DNA from: Dimorphilus gyrociliatus
Taxonomy: Eukaryota > Animalia > Annelida
NCBI GenBank assembly: GCA_904063045.1
Contig: CAJFCJ010000007.1
Span: 3,603,404 to 3,667,403 of the forward strand
Direction of reading: 5' to 3'
Length of the DNA stretch: 64,000 nucleotides
In this document: positions 32,400 through 45,720 of the stretch, in pieces
Layout: each line of letters opens with the position of its first letter
Position numbering within the stretch: the stretch's first letter is position 1
Program-made: the position numbers and the translations under genes
Notes under the pieces: generated by a model
Told to the model about the DNA's origin: nothing
The model's input: the letters and a program-made list of their open reading frames with translations, nothing else
Database searches by the model: none

Positions 32400-32632
32400 N
32401 NNNNNNNNNNNNNNNNNNNNNNNNNNNNNNNNNNNNNNNNNNNNNNNNNNNNNNNNNNNNNNNNNNNNNNNNNNNNNNNNNNNNNNNNNNNNNNNNNNNN
32501 NNNNNNNNNNNNNNNNNNNNNNNNNNNNNNNNNNNNNNNNNNNNNNNNNNNNNNNNNNNNNNNNNNNNNNNNNNNNNNNNNNNNNNNNNNNNNNNNNNNN
32601 NNNNNNNNNNNNNNNNNNNNNNNNNNNNNNNN
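32400..32632. other. Assembly gap (233 N)
   Basis: Run of N in the sequence. Confidence 1.
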
Positions 32633-34106: not shown

Positions 34107-37100
34107 ATGGACGAGGAAGACCGACGATCCGACAGTGAAGTTTCTAAAGATGAGAAAATAATGACACCTCCCGTTCCTCCAAGAAGGCCTACATTCATGA
34201 TAAGCGATATCTTATCAAGGAAAGAACCGATTAGACGTCCTCGACCTTATGCGTTTACGGATAATCGCATGATAATTGGCGGTGATGACGACGAAGAAAG
34301 CGATTGTAGTGGTAAGTTAAAAAAAATATAGAAAAGAATTAAATAATAATAATAAAAAATAGATATAAAATAAACATCTAGCAATATAAAAATATGAACG
34401 AAAGACATATTTTTTTTTAGAAGAGATCGTAAAATCTTAAAATAATTAAAAAAAAGAAATAAAAGTTTTTCCTTGTTTTTTAAAAAAAAAAAATTAACTT
34501 TTTTTTTTAATAAAACTATTTTCATTAAATTAAAATAGGTTGTAAAAAAAAATTGTTAAATTTATAAATATGAAATTATAAACATACAAAATAGAACTTG
34601 AAATAGAATAACGATTATAGGATTTATGACGACAACTCTAACGATAATTTATTAAGTATATAAAAATACTTTCAATATAAAACATAACAGTATCTTTTAG
34701 CGATAATTTTTAAAAATAATATTATTTTAGCGGATAGAGTTAGACAGCTGGTGAAAATCCGATATATAGGAAGAATTGCTTTAAAAAAAAAAAAATTCCA
34801 AGTAGGCCTATAAAATTGCTTTTTTTAAGGCAGCATAAGAGCAATTTAGTAGAGGCGATAGAGTTTGACTATGTGATATATATGTATGTATGTATAAAAG
34901 AGAGATATTATATATAATTCCACAGTTCAATAGACCAAGATAAAAAAAATATTGAAGCATATATAACATACATGTAAATTAACTATTCATGAAAAAGCGG
35001 TGATTAGATTTATATATCTCGAATAAATTAAAATTCATAGAGTAGAATAGTATTAACCTGTAATAAAAAGTCCATATGATAATAATTTAATGACATTTTA
35101 TAGATTTACACAAGCTGTTCATAATAGTTGAATAGGAATGTATTCAATGAATGGAATATTTAAATTAGATTAATTAATATATAATAACATTATCCTTTTT
35201 TTTATACTTAGTTATAATATTTTATTAAGAAGTACTTAAAAAAATAATCAGTCTTCCTCCGTCCGTTTCATTACCATCCGCTCTCTCACTCTTCCTATCT
35301 TTGATTTTGTTTTTGGTTTATTTTAAATCATTTATTCATTGGGATCTTTATAAATCGTAATAAAAAAAAAGTCAAGAGAACGGAAAAGTTTTAGATTTTC
35401 TTCTTTCTATAATAAAGAAATTAATAAAATATTAAAAAATTTAATTAAAAAAATCAGTCATCGTAAAAAAAAAGAAAAGGAACACAACAACATCAACTGT
35501 GCAATGAAGTGGGCAGAAGAAGTAGGCATTTTTTTCTTTCTATGATTAATTAATTGGGTCATTAGAAGTTGCGTGTCTAAGCAAATTTTCTTCTGATTTC
35601 ATGAATTAATATATGTTGATTTAAGTTTATATTTAGAGTGATTGTCTAATTAATTGATTACCAAAGGAGAAATCTATTAAAAGAAAATGTTGTATTCTTA
35701 TTTAATTATTAAAACAAGTAGAAAAGAAATAATGAGGATAAAGGAAAAGGAAAAAGAAACTAATAGAAGAAATACTATAATGATTTTACCAAATTCTCCT
35801 TTTAAATTAATAATCAGTTCTATTAGAAAACGATTGACTACTATCAGGTAAAGAGTATAGTAGAAAGAAAAATGGGAGGAGTTGCTAGTAATAAGACCTA
35901 GGAGAGTTATTTTGTTAATTTTTATCTATTGAGTAAGCACATTATTTCCGATTCATACGAAATAGCTTGATAATTAAACGCCTAGCAAAAAGCATGAAAA
36001 AGTCGCAGGTGGACAAACAAGAGTCTTTGAAGCGTAAAAACAGCAATTAATCGTTGAAAAGGTGCGAATTCCTAGGCAAAATACAGGTCGCTAGGTGTAT
36101 GTTTAGATTGTATTATGCGGTTTTATTTATATGTTTTCTTTTGTAGAAAATGGCGGTCGGGATGAAACGGAAAATGATTGTGGTTCCATTAAAGCATCTA
36201 ATAAATCGTCGAAGAAGCCTAGAAAGGCCAGAACCGCCTTTACCGATCATCAATTGAACGAATTAGAAGCGAGTTTCTCAAGACAAAAATACCTCAGTGT
36301 TCAAGATCGAATGGAATTGGCATCTAGATTGAATCTCTCCGATACACAAGTCAAAACTTGGTACCAAAATAGAAGGTAAGCCTACAATTTCTTTAAAGTA
36401 ATTTAATATAAAAAATAAGCTACTATGCTAATTTATTATTAACAATCATTATCTTATCATTATTTAAAGCAACTATAGTACCCTTATAGACTAAATATAC
36501 GTCTGTACCGTATATTAGTATATAAACTGCAATATAGCGTGCCTTATTAGCTTATACCTTATTAACTCTTAAGAGAATAATTTATTTAGGAGTAAAAATT
36601 TTTGATATATTGTTCAACATTAGAATTATCAATGTTTAAATATCATTAAATTGTATGTGAGAAATTTGCTTTTTTGTGTTCTATGACGTACTTATACTGC
36701 TTTGAAAAGCGATAAAAAGACTGAATAGTGTCATGATTGTGCCAATCTATACAAGCCGATTTTCGTTGGATTGTATGATCTATATAGAAAAAACACTCTT
36801 CTCAGGCCTTTTTTTTATTGCTATCACCCTTTTCTTTATGTATTTTCTGTCTTATTCTCCAATATAACCTTAGATATCTGTCTATCTATCTATCTTTCTA
36901 TCTATCTGTCTTTCTGAGCATATTATAGTCTTCACTTTACTTTCTCTTCAACAAAAGGAGGCGGGATTGTGTAGTATACGTTTTGTAAACTTTAAGAGGT
37001 AGGAAAGAGGAGAGAGCGAGAGATCGTATACATACATAGATGGAAAAAATAGATGGATAGAGGTTCATATGAAAATTTAATGTAGGAAACTTTCCGCCTC

Positions 37101-37927
37101 TCCTTTCTTTTATTCTTTGATTGTTAAATAAAAAATATCGCCGACTAACTTGTAACAGAATTTATTAAAATGCGTCACATTCATTTTCATTTGTAACGCT
37201 TTTTTTTTATTTCGTATATCTAGTGTATATTTAACATTACAAGGGTGGAAAAAAAAGAGAGGGAGAGACGGCTCTTATTTCAGCATCTCTCGTCAGCCAA
37301 TAAAAAATCGCAGTGTTTCACGCATCGCTAACCGCAATCGGCGTTGCAGTTCAGTGAATTGTTTACGTGACACTTTTGTTGACTAATTTACATATGGGAA
37401 GTACGCCGGAAATTGAAAGAAATTATTTCTAATTGATCGCCATTTTTTCAATTCTTTATTCCTTGACTGAGAGGATGTCATATACAAAAATCCCAGTTGA
37501 GTCGTAAAGCTTTTTGTAAATTTTTGAACGAGCTGTAAAGTGATGCTATTTTTTTTGCCTCATAGGCGTTACCTAAATTTAAAAGCACATTAATTCTTTT
37601 GTACATATATTTCTACTTTTTACCATTTATAGAACAAAATGGAAAAGGCAAACAGCAGTTGGACTGGAACTACTCGCTGAAGCTGGAAATTTAGCTGCTG
37701 TGCAACGTCTAGTTCATTCAAACTCATCTTATTGGTCAGCTTACTTACCCCCTCCAGGTGGAGCTGCTGGAGGAGGAATAATGTCGAATTTGGACGCTCT
37801 TTACTCAAGGGGGACGGCTTGTCCAGCGCCACCTAGGCCATTTATACCCAGATTGTTTATACAAGGCCTACAGCAACACGTCAATCATTTACCTCCCAGT
37901 TTGCCGCATTCCGAATCAAATTCTTGA
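34107..37927 (+). CDS. BarH: BarH-like homeobox protein, paralog A; exons 34107-34311, 36147-36375, 37633-37927 (242 aa)
   Basis: eh1/FIL motif TFMISDIL; homeodomain [60 protein letters not shown] with the Bar-diagnostic WYQNRR, followed by [19 protein letters not shown] at 33998 and a GC box at 34031. Confidence 0.96.
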
Positions 37928-38051
37928 CTCTTTGAACATTGAATTTCTTCTTTTTTTTCATTCTAAAAATCGTCTTGTTTTTTTTTGTCTGCAGCTTACA
38001 ATATAACTTCTGTAAATCATTTAAGTAACAATATTTAAGATGAGAGCAAGA

Positions 38052-38054
<3 letters not shown>

Positions 38055-38089
<35 letters not shown>
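38055..38089. repeat. (GA)n microsatellite; similar tracts at ~42960-42985, ~47441-47472, ~49850-49875, ~52045-52090, ~52300-52320
   Basis: Direct reading of GA dinucleotide runs. Confidence 0.9.
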
Positions 38090-38092
<3 letters not shown>

Positions 38093-39690
38093 ATAAATTT
38101 ATACTTAAAAACACTGTATATAAATTTTTTCATTCTAAAATTAAGTATGAAAGTGAAAAAGAAAATGAAAGATAAAATGAGAAAGGAAGAAAGGAAGAAA
38201 GAAAAAAGAGAGAGAAATTTACACATTTTATTATTTTGTTTGTTTGTTTTTTTTTGTTCACGAAAACAATTGTACTTTCAATAAACGATAATTTATAATC
38301 GTTAATGAGCAGTTTGTCAAATTTATTATTTATTGCTTCTTAATCTATCTTTTCTTCTTCTTCCTCCTCCTCCTCCTCTTCCTCCCCCTTCTCCTCCTAT
38401 TCTTCTTCTTCTTCTTTTGTAAAAATATTATAATAACCATAGAAAGAATATACAAGGGACAAAGGGAGAATATTGTAAGATGCTAAGAGCTTTTCTCTGA
38501 TATAATAGAAGAGGAATAGAAAAGGCGAGAAAATTAGATAAGTGAGGGAAAATGGGCGGAGTTTATAACGGATAGGTTTATTGCGTTTAGAAAGAATATT
38601 GCCCAAACGGAAGCATTTTGAGTGTCAAAACTGACACTTGACCTATAAAAATATCTCTCCGTGCAACTTGAAAATATGCTTTCTTGTAATAGCCGAATAG
38701 AACGCAAAGTAGTAATTATAGGTCACGTGACATTATTGAGGAGGATAAGCACCAAGTGACAAAGAGAATAAAGATAAAAACTGCAGAGTGAGCGAATGTT
38801 TTGAAAGATAATAAAATAAGAGGAGAGATAAAGAAAAGAATGGGAAATAAGACTATTGGAAGAAGAAGAAGAAGAAGAAGAAGAAGAAGAATATGATGAT
38901 GGTGAAAAAAAGGAAAATCTGGAAAAGTAGGCGAAAATTTTATGTTTTCAAAACATGGAATGTAAAACAGTTAAAAATCGCCTTTAAAATTTAATTTCCT
39001 GCCAAACTTGAAATAATCCTATCGATCCATGGAGAAAATTACCTGCCTAACGACGCTAATGTATCAAAGAAAAGCTTGATTTCCGATCAGACGTGATTGC
39101 GCATATTAATCCAAAATCGGGGTGTCAATTTTTTCGACGCTACCCGCGTTTCTCTATATAAACATCGAATTTGCAATGGATTATTAGTGGATTAACAACC
39201 ACCGTCCAACTATTTGTTGATAACTAGCAGGCAGTTTGCCTATGCATAATTTATGCTAATGATTTGCCTGTAAAATTTTTCGGACGAATATTTTTTTGTA
39301 TAGATTTGTATAAATGAGATTTATTTCTCTCTTGTCTAAACTACTTAAGAGTCTTATTTTAAAGAATTAGGCCTACTAGTTTGTAAAAAGAGGAAACCAA
39401 TATCCTACTTAATTATATTCCAATGTGATTTTTAAGTGTATAAAGCTCTACACTTGTAAATTGCCTTTAAATTTACTCAATTCGCCACCTAAATAAGAAG
39501 GATTTATTCTCTTGAAGGTACTCAACAATCTTTACCTATTATGAATCCTAATTAAGATATATAGGGTGGATTAATTTATAGTTATTCCCTCAAAAAATTA
39601 TCGTTTAAGGGCTAGGGCGAAAATTCTCCAATCCCCGGAAAGAGAGGAAGTATATCAGGGAAAAAAAACCACCATTACACAGTAGTACCA

Positions 39691-39705
39691 CCAGTAGGAG
39701 GCGCT
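39691..39705 (+). promoter_or_regulatory. CTCF-like motif CCAGTAGGAGGCGCT between the two BarH genes
   Basis: Matches CCASYAGRKGGCRS except at one position. Confidence 0.5.
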
Positions 39706-41492
39706 CGAAAGCAACGCTAAATGGATGCAAATGGAAGCGATAAAGAGACAAATCACATTCATAGAACAGACAATATTCGATTCGCCCGCGGATAAATAAA
39801 CTTTATTTATCGAACATGGCTGGACTGCGACGTTTTTGCGCGGTTTACTTAATCGAATTGCAGTATTTTCATTTTAAGCTACTGCAAAACATTTCTGCTA
39901 TCTCTTTAAAAACATTGGTAAAAGGTTTATTAAATTATAAAGCAAGTAAAATTCTGCGATTTCCCCCTGCACCGAAATCTATACTCTTTAAGTATGTACT
40001 CGCAGAAATGGAGAACATATAGGCCTAAGGGTATATGCATTCCCTCATTGCGGTCGATGTCTGGTCAACTGCAACGAGTGCGCTAATAGCTCAGCCAACT
40101 GTCGTCAAGAGGCGTCTCTCGCCGTGTAAAGTGACATCTCAAAATGTCGCCGGGGACGAATCGGATTTCCCTACTACTGCAGAGCATTTTGCAGTCGGTC
40201 GCTTTAAATACAGATCGTCTGCATTATTCAACGCCGCTAAGATACGGCGCGACGCCGACGAAAGTGGTGTGAATTTTGGATGAGAGTGACTACTGTAGTT
40301 TTATCCCTCAATAAAACTGTATTGTTTAAACAAAATATCTTACAATCCCAATTGTAATTTATACAACGGTTTACATTGTATATTATATTCTGATGCAGTT
40401 GGGGAATAGACGCTTTTATTGCAGCGTGTAATTTAGATTTGATTTTACATGCTTAATAATTTTTATCGATATTGCGCATAGCATTACAAACTGTTTAGGT
40501 ATTATATGTTTGCCAAGGAACATACAATTAGGAAGGAAGGCAGGATGTGACACTTGCGTGTTTTAGAATTGTTTAACCTAGCCTACAAGCTAATAGGCCT
40601 ATGAAGCGACAACAAATTTATAACAGCCCCGGAATTTATATATACCAAAAGCCGTTAAATAATCGAATATATATATATACAGTATATAGATTTATGTAAT
40701 ATACTTTATATGCACATATATACACACTGTATATATAAATATCGGAGACGCTCCCGAGCGTTTCGTGCAAATTGTCAACAAATATAAAGTGTAAATAAAT
40801 AAGCGCAATAGCGGCGTATAAATGGGCGGCGTTCAGCCAAGCGCGAAGCGGCGTCTCCTCTCGTCAAGTCAATTTTCGAGCCGTCTCCGAACCGAATTAC
40901 AAACAATCGACGCCGCTAACGAGATTTGTTTACCATTTACTGTAAAGTGGCTCTGTTGCCGCTGATATTTAGGAGTATTGCCCATGGTATATTTGTTTAT
41001 TTATTATACTTTTGTCGCAAATAAAGGTCTTTTATATACATATCAATACAAATATACATATATGCATTTAAAAAATATGCATTCTACGATAATTATGATA
41101 GGAATTATAATGCAGAGAAAATATTTCATACCAGTTTCCATATTAAAAAATTTATAGAGCAAGAAGCAAAGAAGAAGAAGAAGGGAAGAAAATATTAACT
41201 TTTTAAACAGGAAACGCTTATAAAAAATAACGTTTGAGTAACGCCTTTTTTTTTTGTTTAAAATAATAAAAACAAAAGAATTAGAGGGAAGAAAGGATAA
41301 TTTTTAATAAAAGAATCATAATTAATGCATGACATAAATATTACGGTTTAAAGGGTAATGGACCTAGGGAAAATGAGAATGAAATATCTCTCCATGATAT
41401 AACTATTAAATATTTATGGCGTTTTGTAAGCTGTTTGGTCGAAATATATTATCGAATATATACTATACATATCCTATATAGATTAGTATATA

Positions 41493-41523
<31 letters not shown>

Positions 41524-42379
41524 CTAAGAGAGAAAATGTATTATATCAATAATAGGATTGAATATATCGCTTTTGCTTTATTTATTTACACTTTATGCTT
41601 GTTGACAGTTCGCACGATCAAGTCAATACTCTAAAGCACACGTATAGATATATACTTAGTTAAAACAGCCAATTAATCTCTCTAATCTCTAATCCATAAT
41701 AGATTATTCCAAAATGGCGTGCTATCCTTTTTTTTAAAAAATATACAATAGATTGGATAGTAAGCAGTAAAACGCCAACCTAATTGTTCACTTTGGACGC
41801 AAATTGTGGAAAAAGTAGCGCAAAGCACGAAATAAACCTATCATACAGTTCCTGTTATATCCATCTTAGTCTTTGTTTAATAGTTTCTCGATGAATGCAT
41901 ACAAAATATTTCGAGCTTATACAACTATGTTTCTATTTCTGGCCATAAATTATTAATAAGTGCAGTATACGGTATTTAAATTTACACACGCGTTACATTT
42001 ACATTTACATATTTAACTATATAAATACACAATATACATCTCATTGTAATCTTCCACTCCCGCTTCTTATTCTCTCTTATCAACTCTTAGTCACTCGAAA
42101 ATATACATACTCGATTCCCCTGTATGCATATATGTATATATAGACTGTATAACGTTGGCGAACTACTTCCAAAATGGGAGGAGTTTAACAAATAGGCGGA
42201 GTCTATTAACTAGCCAATCAAATCTAAGAGTATTCTCCCGACACATCTGCCGTCTTCTTTTATTCAGCGTGTTTTAGCAATTCACCGTCAAACTATCAAC
42301 TTCAAACGCGAAAGCGGAAATCCAAAAGATTTCTCTTTTTATCTTTCTAAAAAGATAAAAATAAAGATAAAGAAAAAAA

Positions 42380-45300
42380 ATGACAGAGAAAATTGAATCG
42401 AAAATCAGAACGAGCTTCTTCATCGACGACATATTAGGAACATCACCATGCCCCGACGAAGATATCAGCGTCTCGGAAGAAGGTACAATTTATTTTACTA
42501 TTGACCTAGATTATAATTTGATAAACAAAATGGCTACCAAAAGTAAACATTGTCATATGGTGGCGCAATTCGATGTTTTTAAAAATTATAAATAGCAACA
42601 AAAAAAAGAATTAAAAGGGTAAAGAGAGTTTGATAACGGAGCAAATTGAAAAGAAACTATATAAATATATATAGAATTTATATATATATATATACTATAT
42701 GTATGAAAAAAAGGTCAAAAAGAACATTTAAAGGGAAAAAGAAATAAAATTTAAATGGGAATGTTTGTACTGCTAAAAATCGACAATAACTTTTTATTTA
42801 TTATATTAAAAAATATCTAGTGAATAATAGCCGTAAAATAGATATTCTTACAAAAAGAACAAACTAAATTTCAGGTAAATTGAAGTAGTAATAGAGAGTG
42901 TGTTTTTTACGACTATTTACGTCAAATAAAAGATTTTAATGTTGATAAAGAGGTAGAAAGAGAGGAGAGAGAGAGAGAGAGAACTCTCTTTTCTTTTTCA
43001 TTGATTTTATTTCCCCTTCTACTATACTTTTCTAAAATTTAAATGTATAAACAACTTACCACAATTCAATATCAATGAAAGAATCAGATTAAAATGTCAA
43101 ATTTTCCTATTCAATAGCCAGGATTGTAGTATGAAAATGTACTTAGTAAAAATTGAATTGATACCAAGTCTGATAAGGGAAGAGAATGAATGAATTGACT
43201 GAATGAATGAATAAAAAAAAAAGATTAATAGTTTTAAAAATATGATGAAAGAGATTAGCGAATTACCTCATTCTTATGAAATGACTTCTAAAAATAACAC
43301 GATTTATAGATTTATATAAGGGATTGGTATGTGTTTTGATAAGATTAATGTTATAAAAATATTCTATTAAAAGTCTTATTTGAAATAAGATGTCACTTTC
43401 AAAGATTTAACACTACTGTTACTCCTCCTACTTGTGCTCTTTTATTAAAATAGTAATGGAAGTGATATGTAATTGAAAACCACACGTGTAAGAGGATTTA
43501 ATCAAGATCTTTTTACGTCATGTGAGATAGAATTGTAATTATTAGGCAATCAAACTAAAATATTATAATAATAAAGGTCAAGCGGGTGCAGATCTTTTAA
43601 AAAAAGACATCTTATCATCTTTAAATTGATAATAGAATGGTCATTAACAATTATTAAAAAAATACATTGTATTATAGATACGAGACAATAAGAAACAAAT
43701 GTTTTATCTCCCATTTAAAGAATAGCAAATCTGGTGATGTATAGCGAGATGTTTACTTTTCACTATTTCTATTATAATAATTGAATAAATAGAGAGAAAA
43801 ACCAAAAATTTTGCATGCATAATTAAGTAAAAATGTCAATCGGACAAGGCAGATCACAGACGATGATAAGCGGTCGAGCAACAGCTGTTGAATACAGACG
43901 CTGTAACATCTGACATGTAATACATTCGAAACGTCACCCTTTATACCAGAGGGCAGATTTCTAAAAAGAAGATAATAACACCCTTTTTCAAACCTTATCG
44001 TATATCTTTATCGGTTGGAACCCGCATGTTCAATTAGTTGAATATTTAAATTGTTAAGAAAGCGAAACTGTATACTATTATATATTCAGTTATTTATTAT
44101 AGTCGGTATAGGAAGTTTAAGAATACCACTCTATATTTTCCCACAATTAGTCTATAAAAATCATACATTATACCCTATTATTTCCCCCTATCTTTTCAGA
44201 AGAGAATTGTTCCCAAACTGCTGGAAGACCTATTAGATGTAAGAAAGCTAGAAAAGCTAGAACCGCCTTCACCGATCATCAATTGAACGAATTAGAAGCG
44301 AGTTTCTCAAGACAAAAATACCTCAGTGTTCAAGATCGAATGGAATTGGCATCTAGATTGAATCTCTCCGATACACAAGTCAAAACTTGGTACCAAAATA
44401 GAAGGTAGGACTTGATCTAATAAATTATTTTCGTATTTTATTCGTTCGAAACTAATTTACAAAGAGAATTATATAAAGAGCGAGCTAAAATTGTAAAAAG
44501 TTTATAATACAAGAGGTGCAAAGTGGCGAAAAGGACAAGCTATGAATGGCAATGAAAAGAATAGAGATTTAGGCAATGATTTGACTAAATAAATAACTTT
44601 ACTATCTCCTATTTTTTCCCATTCACAAACATTATCTTATCAACAAAATAAAAAAGACCTTATACTTTGTACAAGAATCACTTGACTTAATAAGAGAAAA
44701 AGGGGGAGGAATAGAGTTTATCGGCAACTTCTCCATTAAAGTATACATTTAATGGAAGAGTCGTTTGATATATAGAATATTAATCAACAATAGAGGTAAA
44801 ATACGGAGGTGGATACCACTATCTCTTCTAAATACAGTTGTATTTGATGAGTGTTCATTAAATGTTAATTCCGCATTCAGATATGATGTGTGAATAGGAT
44901 TACTTATGAATAAGTAATTTTTTAATTGATGTATTCGTCCTAACCTATATTTTACGCTTAACTATTTATGACAAAATATTGAAATTATTCAATTTTCCAT
45001 TGACCTTTGACACTAGTATTCTCTATTAGTGTCTTGTCGTTTTTCTTTCTCTTTCTCCTCTTCCTTTCTTTGCAGGATTATTTACTATATATTTATTATA
45101 TTAACGATTAGATTTTATTCGACTTATACATAAGAGAGGATTTTAAGGGGAATGAAGACAGAGAGGAGGGAGGTAATAGAGAAGAGGAGAATGTACATAA
45201 ACAAAAAAAGAACCGCTTTAACGAACTGCTACGTACGAACAATAAGTTAATGAATAATTTTATTGAAACGCTACTAAAGTTTTCATGAAAATTACGTAAC

Positions 45301-45720
45301 AATCTTGCAATTATACTTAAACATCAAAGGGAATATTATAACGATTTTAGTTCAATTACAAAGTAGTTGGAACGTTATTATCTTTTTTTTCCTTTATTCA
45401 TTTTATAGATTAGATAACGTTAAATAAAGAACTAAAAAAAATTTGATAATAAATGTCATCATCCGTAAATAAAATTTCGTAATAGAGAAAAGGAAATTAT
45501 TGTAAATTGATGTCATGTTTTTTCATGCAGAACCAAATGGAAGAGACAAACAGCAGTTGGGTTAGAACTATTAGCGGAAGCTGGTAATTTAGCGGCTGTT
45601 CAACGACTCGTTCAAACGAACAACAATTATTGGAATCATTTTTTACCAACTTTCCGCCCATTCCAGCCCATACGATTTTTTCCGCCCCTTATGAACAACT
45701 TTAGCAGACAATCTCATTAG
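42380..45720 (+). CDS. BarH: BarH-like homeobox protein, paralog B; exons 42380-42482, 44200-44404, 45531-45720 (165 aa); exons 2-3 absent from the ORF track
   Basis: eh1 motif SFFIDDIL; near-identical Bar homeodomain (KARKARTAF...WYQNRRTKWKRQ) and [21 protein letters not shown]; same intron phases as paralog A. Confidence 0.95.

Follow-up and report, generated by a model that had tools for sequence, protein, structure and literature searches.

The region analysed here is a stretch of 64,000 nucleotides (nt) from the genome of the annelid Dimorphilus gyrociliatus (GenBank assembly GCA_904063045.1, contig CAJFCJ010000007.1, positions 3,603,404 to 3,667,403 of the forward strand), hereafter called the window, in whose numbering all coordinates are given. 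It contains two complete three-exon genes, assigned below by their sequence to the BarH/BARHL homeobox class and referred to as BarH paralogs A and B, which lie in direct tandem on the + strand of the same contig with a spacing of 8029 nt (approximately 8 kb from start to start). The splice sites of both genes are all GT-AG, and the intron phases are alike in both (1, then 2). Exon 2 of A and exon 2 of B share a tract of 137 identical nucleotides that covers most of the homeobox. The gene models, the two copies of the tract and the homologous coding blocks on either side of it are as follows (a slash in a splice donor marks the end of the exon).

34107-34311, + strand: exon 1 of paralog A; start codon ATG, eh1/FIL-type motif FMISDIL, donor G/GTAAGT, phase 1
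36147-36375, + strand: exon 2 of paralog A; linker and homeodomain positions 1-53, codon 53 split (phase 2), Pfam Homeodomain E = 1.3e-20
37633-37927, + strand: exon 3 of paralog A; end of the homeodomain, BARHL motif, conserved BARHL C-terminal tail, stop codon
Protein of paralog A: 242 amino acids
42380-42482, + strand: exon 1 of paralog B; start codon ATG, eh1/FIL-type motif FFIDDIL, donor AAG/GTACAA, phase 1
44200-44404, + strand: exon 2 of paralog B; linker and homeodomain positions 1-53, Pfam Homeodomain E = 9.4e-21
45531-45720, + strand: exon 3 of paralog B; end of the homeodomain, BARHL motif, short derived tail, stop codon
Protein of paralog B: 165 amino acids
36242-36378, + strand: identical tract, copy in A; homeodomain positions 9-53 and the GTA of the donor
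44271-44407, + strand: identical tract, copy in B; the same 137 nt
36212-36241 (A) and 44241-44270 (B), + strand: 5' homologous flank; 10 codons, KK(P/A)RKARTAF, with 4 synonymous differences and 1 replacement (P/A)
37634-37714 (A) and 45532-45612 (B), + strand: exon 3 block; 27 codons with identical protein, 12 of them synonymously different

An identical tract between silent-saturated flanks

The 137-nt tract, made up of 134 nt of coding sequence and 3 nt (GTA) of the splice donor, is a maximal exact match bounded by T/C at 36241/44270 and by A/G at 36379/44408. In a search of the whole assembly (77.9 Mb, 349 contigs) its sequence was found at these two places only, and within the window it is the sole long repeat that is not of low-complexity or microsatellite type. 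Comparison of the two loci by blastn (word size 7) yielded an alignment in the exon 2 and exon 3 blocks only; the introns, exon 1 and spacer sequence of A gave no alignment with those of B.

Silent sites were counted by the Nei-Gojobori method on a gap-free alignment that runs from KK(P/A)RKARTAF through the homeodomain into exon 3. The 45 codons of the tract, including the split codon of Arg53, showed no differences, i.e. no synonymous differences (Sd = 0) over 26 synonymous sites (S = 26). For the two flanks pooled (37 codons) we counted Sd = 17 over S = 27.8, corresponding to a proportion of synonymous differences (pS) of 0.61, a synonymous divergence (dS) of approximately 1.26 and a nonsynonymous divergence (dN) of 0.024. 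Given the pS of the flanks, the probability of zero differences in the tract is approximately 2e-11. All 16 differing codons lie outside the 43 degenerate codons of the tract (hypergeometric P = 2.4e-7), and a permutation that takes the longest identical run irrespective of its location gave P = 5e-6. Chance is excluded as the source of the identity of the tract. The very low dN/dS of the flanks shows that both A and B are under purifying selection, and B is thus not a pseudogene. There was no signal of GC-biased conversion, the GC content at third codon positions being 0.34 for the tract compared with 0.30 for the flanks.

A preliminary description of this DNA, made from the letters alone, had reported that the two tracts are the same base for base (134 coding nt plus GTA), that identity breaks off abruptly in the intron and upstream, that exon 1 and the introns have no evident alignment, and that exon 3 has at its start 27 full codons for the same residues, 12 of them synonymously different. 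All of this is borne out by the match boundaries, the blastn comparison and the codon counts given above. Its statement that about 44 synonymous positions had stayed identical holds as to the zero silent difference, and the number is refined to 43 degenerate codons, or approximately 26 synonymous sites. Its proposal of gene conversion rather than purifying selection gains support from the comparison of dS by segment, 0 in the tract versus about 1.26 in the pooled flanks.

The only run of N in the window is a scaffold gap of 233 N at 32400-32632, upstream of gene A; none lies between the two genes. The spacer between A and B carries a 40-nt inverted repeat (40763-40802 and 41578-41617, 90% complementary) that brackets 775 nt. 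This unit was considered as a repeated miniature inverted-repeat transposable element or other transposon and was rejected as such, being single-copy in the genome.

Family assignment and divergence of the two paralogs

Several sequence features place A and B in the BarH/BARHL class. The match to the Pfam Homeodomain profile (PF00046) in exon 2 of either gene covers profile positions 1-51, and the remainder of the domain is supplied by exon 3. Homeodomain position 49 is tyrosine instead of phenylalanine in both (VKTWYQNRR), as in all BarH matches found; tyrosine at this position is a hallmark of the Bar class. Directly after the homeodomain follows a 19-residue BARHL motif that does not vary among A, B and 10 further proteins of lophotrochozoans. 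The eh1/FIL-type repression motif of exon 1 was called by inspection, not by profile. Protein word searches, run exon by exon and not with joined spliced proteins, retrieved relatives named BarH-like, Homeobox protein B-H1/B-H2 and barH-like 1/2. Exon 3 of A is 53-66% identical to barH-like 1/2 proteins of Haliotis, Bulinus and Biomphalaria over approximately 91% of its length; the search with this exon returned no close relative, the best match being 66% identical. The search with exon 2 returned no protein with the derived homeodomain residues of the worm, its best matches being 82-92% identical. A third BarH gene was not found in the genome of the worm, where the homeobox that ranks next behind A and B reaches only 66% identity.

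Outside the homeodomain the two proteins have diverged considerably. The C-terminal tail has the full conserved BARHL form in A (37634-37924; SNLDALY...), and B has lost approximately 29 residues of it (45532-45717), the remnant being a degenerate 12-residue stretch. The N-terminus of B is also shorter, exon 1 encoding 34 residues versus 68 in A. Since exon 3 of A aligns with the BARHL tails of molluscs and annelids and the tail of B is shortened and degenerate, A is the BARHL orthologue that has remained conservative, and B is a short paralog of derived form.

A and B nevertheless have derived states in common in the non-identical exon 3, namely a 10-residue stretch and an extra residue before YW, where 10 other lophotrochozoan BARHL sequences read GNYAAVQRML..N-PYW. 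These shared residues indicate that the duplication is specific to the lineage of the worm and not ancient in animals. The age proposed in the preliminary description therefore stands in part: the flank dS of approximately 1.3 and the unalignable introns speak for an old duplication, and the shared derived residues limit how old it can be. Taken together, the duplication is lineage-specific, yet old enough for silent saturation. Both worm homeodomains moreover carry E15, A18, S21 and R37, where nearly all sampled animal BarH sequences have T/S/C, K/Q, E and K, respectively, so that the DNA-binding domain of the pair is unusually derived for the family.

BarH exon 2 in other animals

The control set consisted of 80 BarH exon 2 loci on metagenome contigs from other animals; they provided 82 exon 2 sequences. 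No dinophilid-like sequence was found in this metagenome scan, protein identity being no higher than 92% and that of the nucleotides to the tract no higher than 80%. The 82 sequences are 69% identical to the tract at the nucleotide level (median; 80% at most). When only codons for the same residue were considered, those identical to the tract made up 32% (median; 59% at most).

The metagenome contigs also held a head-to-head pair of BarH-type homeobox genes (L009:1029-3415, L016, L019 and L052) that lie approximately 2.1 kb apart and, over the stretch corresponding to the identical tract of the worm, are 80% identical in nucleotide and 86% in protein sequence. This pair represents an independent BarH duplication without homogenisation.

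In the DNA of the worm itself, three sub-threshold microRNA-like matches were obtained outside the tract, in AT- and GA-rich DNA, and were dismissed as chance matches.

Probable gene conversion between old tandem paralogs

A dS of zero in the tract next to near saturation directly on both sides reads, at the level of sequence, as the signature of gene conversion; purifying selection acting on the protein would not leave this pattern. The explanation that we consider best, and hold to be very probable, is short-tract gene conversion between old tandem paralogs within exon 2. The duplication would be old, the silent sites, introns and non-domain coding sequence of A and B having diverged to saturation. 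One gene would then have received a stretch of at most 137 nt in exon 2 from the other in a non-reciprocal manner, through DNA-level repair of a break with the other copy as template. The 3' end of the tract would lie at the intron because homology ends there, and a cDNA-mediated event (one by way of complementary DNA) is excluded, since exon 3 was not homogenised. Non-crossover tracts commonly have lengths of this order (here up to 137 nt).

Because mismatches strongly inhibit ectopic repair, one event between sequences of only about 80% identity is difficult in mechanistic terms, and we consider recurrent homogenisation of exon 2 likelier. The homology block of exon 2, at approximately 165 nt the longest without interruption, may have been homogenised repeatedly since the duplication and so have stayed an 'identity island'. 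The exon 3 block (approximately 100 nt), set apart by introns that lack homology (1257 and 1126 nt), would have escaped conversion earlier. This follows the idea of a sequence-dependent 'escape from conversion' (Walsh 1987, as cited in PMC3199776). Conversion was probably recurrent, though it may also have been a single event. The last conversion would fall roughly within the latest tenth of the divergence time of the paralogs, because none of the 26 silent sites has changed, which sets an upper bound of approximately 0.1 on dS compared with approximately 1.3 in the flanks.

A further possibility, which we regard as rather unlikely, concerns direction and selection: conversion from the fast-evolving B to the conservative A may have imported the unusual residues 15, 18, 21 and 37, absent from the 82 BarH sequences of other animals, into the ancestral gene, or selection for identical DNA-binding domains may keep the island by favouring converted alleles.

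Alternative explanations

Identity of the tract could instead reflect constraint on the nucleotides themselves, an overlapping function such as an RNA structure, a small-RNA target, an exonic enhancer or a splicing code having fixed all silent sites in both genes since the duplication. Synonymous constraint occurs in some homeobox genes, and the part of the protein encoded by the tract is also the one that is most conserved. However, equally conserved protein segments on both sides of the tract are saturated at silent sites, the RNA fold of the tract is no better than that of shuffled sequences (z = -0.19), and a comparison with Rfam gave no family for it. We know of no precedent for perfect constraint on approximately 43 degenerate codons in a row. 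The other animals point the same way: besides the low identity of their exon 2 sequences and same-residue codons to the tract, close pairs of alleles or orthologues show 3 differences in the same 132 nt at an intron divergence of 7-8%, and the head-to-head BarH pair of another animal (four loci) is only 80% identical over this stretch. The silent sites of this stretch thus appear free to change in other animals, which makes a deep nucleotide constraint unlikely; a constraint limited to the lineage of the worm might still act. Overall we give an explanation by nucleotide-level constraint very little credence.

Gene conversion has points to its disadvantage as well. It is inferred from the assembly of one species, and the estimates of flank divergence come from only 37 codons. 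On the 5' side, divergence jumps from 0% to approximately 17% within 30 nt and without a gradient, and so abrupt a boundary fits a single recent event at least as well as recurrent events with variable ends. The published D. gyrociliatus assembly (approximately 78 Mb) was moreover produced from PacBio data, polished by Quiver and Pilon and processed with HaploMerger2 and SSPACE, and reads contained entirely in a shared stretch may be placed wrongly. One copy might accordingly have had its consensus overwritten by reads of the other, or the stretch might have been mis-joined. Such an artefact seems to us highly improbable. Copies differing by approximately 20% would not confuse long reads anchored in the introns, nor short reads of 100-150 nt; as reads would map uniquely at this divergence, polishing could erase one or two differences, a few at most, and could not create the tract. 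In addition, the assembly has no gap between A and B, and the tract has its boundaries at a codon and at the end of the exon, not at a contig or read-scale feature.

A recent duplication followed by rapid divergence everywhere except in the homeobox would need no conversion at all. The derived exon 3 residues shared by A and B, i.e. a lineage-specific duplication, are in keeping with this scenario, but it requires that the introns, exon 3 and the 30 nt upstream became saturated around 26 unchanged silent sites (P = 2e-11), and we find it scarcely credible.

Comparison with known homeobox gene pairs

The nearest parallel comes from another annelid, in which gene conversion of a homeobox has been described for Dlxa and Dlxb of Capitella teleta (McDougall et al. 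2011, PMC3199776). Like the pair described here, Dlxa and Dlxb are duplicated homeobox genes in close linkage that have diverged strongly in the rest of their sequence. Their homeobox is nucleotide-identical on the 5' side of its intron, and the tract detected with GENECONV, approximately 150 bp in length, ends just inside the intron (PMC3199776). The authors spoke of a 'mosaic' conversion that affects only the most conserved part (PMC3199776). The two cases differ in gene class and layout, the Capitella genes being Dlx genes in inverted tail-to-tail arrangement and the worm genes BarH genes in direct tandem. They differ further in that the 3' part of the Capitella homeobox has only 3 differences, whereas silent sites have reached saturation in exon 3 of the worm pair (12 of 27 codons).

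A second parallel is the concerted evolution of engrailed and invected in hexapods (Peel, Telford and Akam 2006, reference 49 in PMC3199776). These genes are likewise tandem homeobox paralogs; their conserved coding sequence reportedly undergoes homogenisation within lineages, and the homeobox consequently gives a false date for the duplication. They are arthropod genes of another homeobox class, and their concerted evolution is reported to have been shown by phylogenetic incongruence across many species, whereas the worm case is drawn from one genome.

Within the BarH class itself, the worm pair shares the Tyr49 homeodomain, the FIL/eh1 motifs and the post-homeodomain motif with BarH1/BarH2 of Drosophila and BARHL1/BARHL2 of vertebrates. 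BarH1 and BarH2 of Drosophila are neighbouring duplicates. The worm duplication is independent of both of these pairs, because A and B share derived residues. In the literature searched we found nothing that links BarH1/BarH2 to concerted evolution, and the Dimorphilus genome paper and its supplements make no mention of BarH or of gene conversion.

Conversion in homeobox gene pairs is already known, and the BarH case adds to those of Dlx and engrailed/invected without introducing a new mechanism. It provides a small but statistically strong example of mosaic concerted evolution in a pair of developmental transcription factors. Judged from the homeobox alone, the duplication of A and B would be dated as brand new, while silent sites in the remaining parts of both genes have reached saturation, and the pair therefore calls for caution in homeobox phylogenies and in the dating of paralogs in compact genomes.

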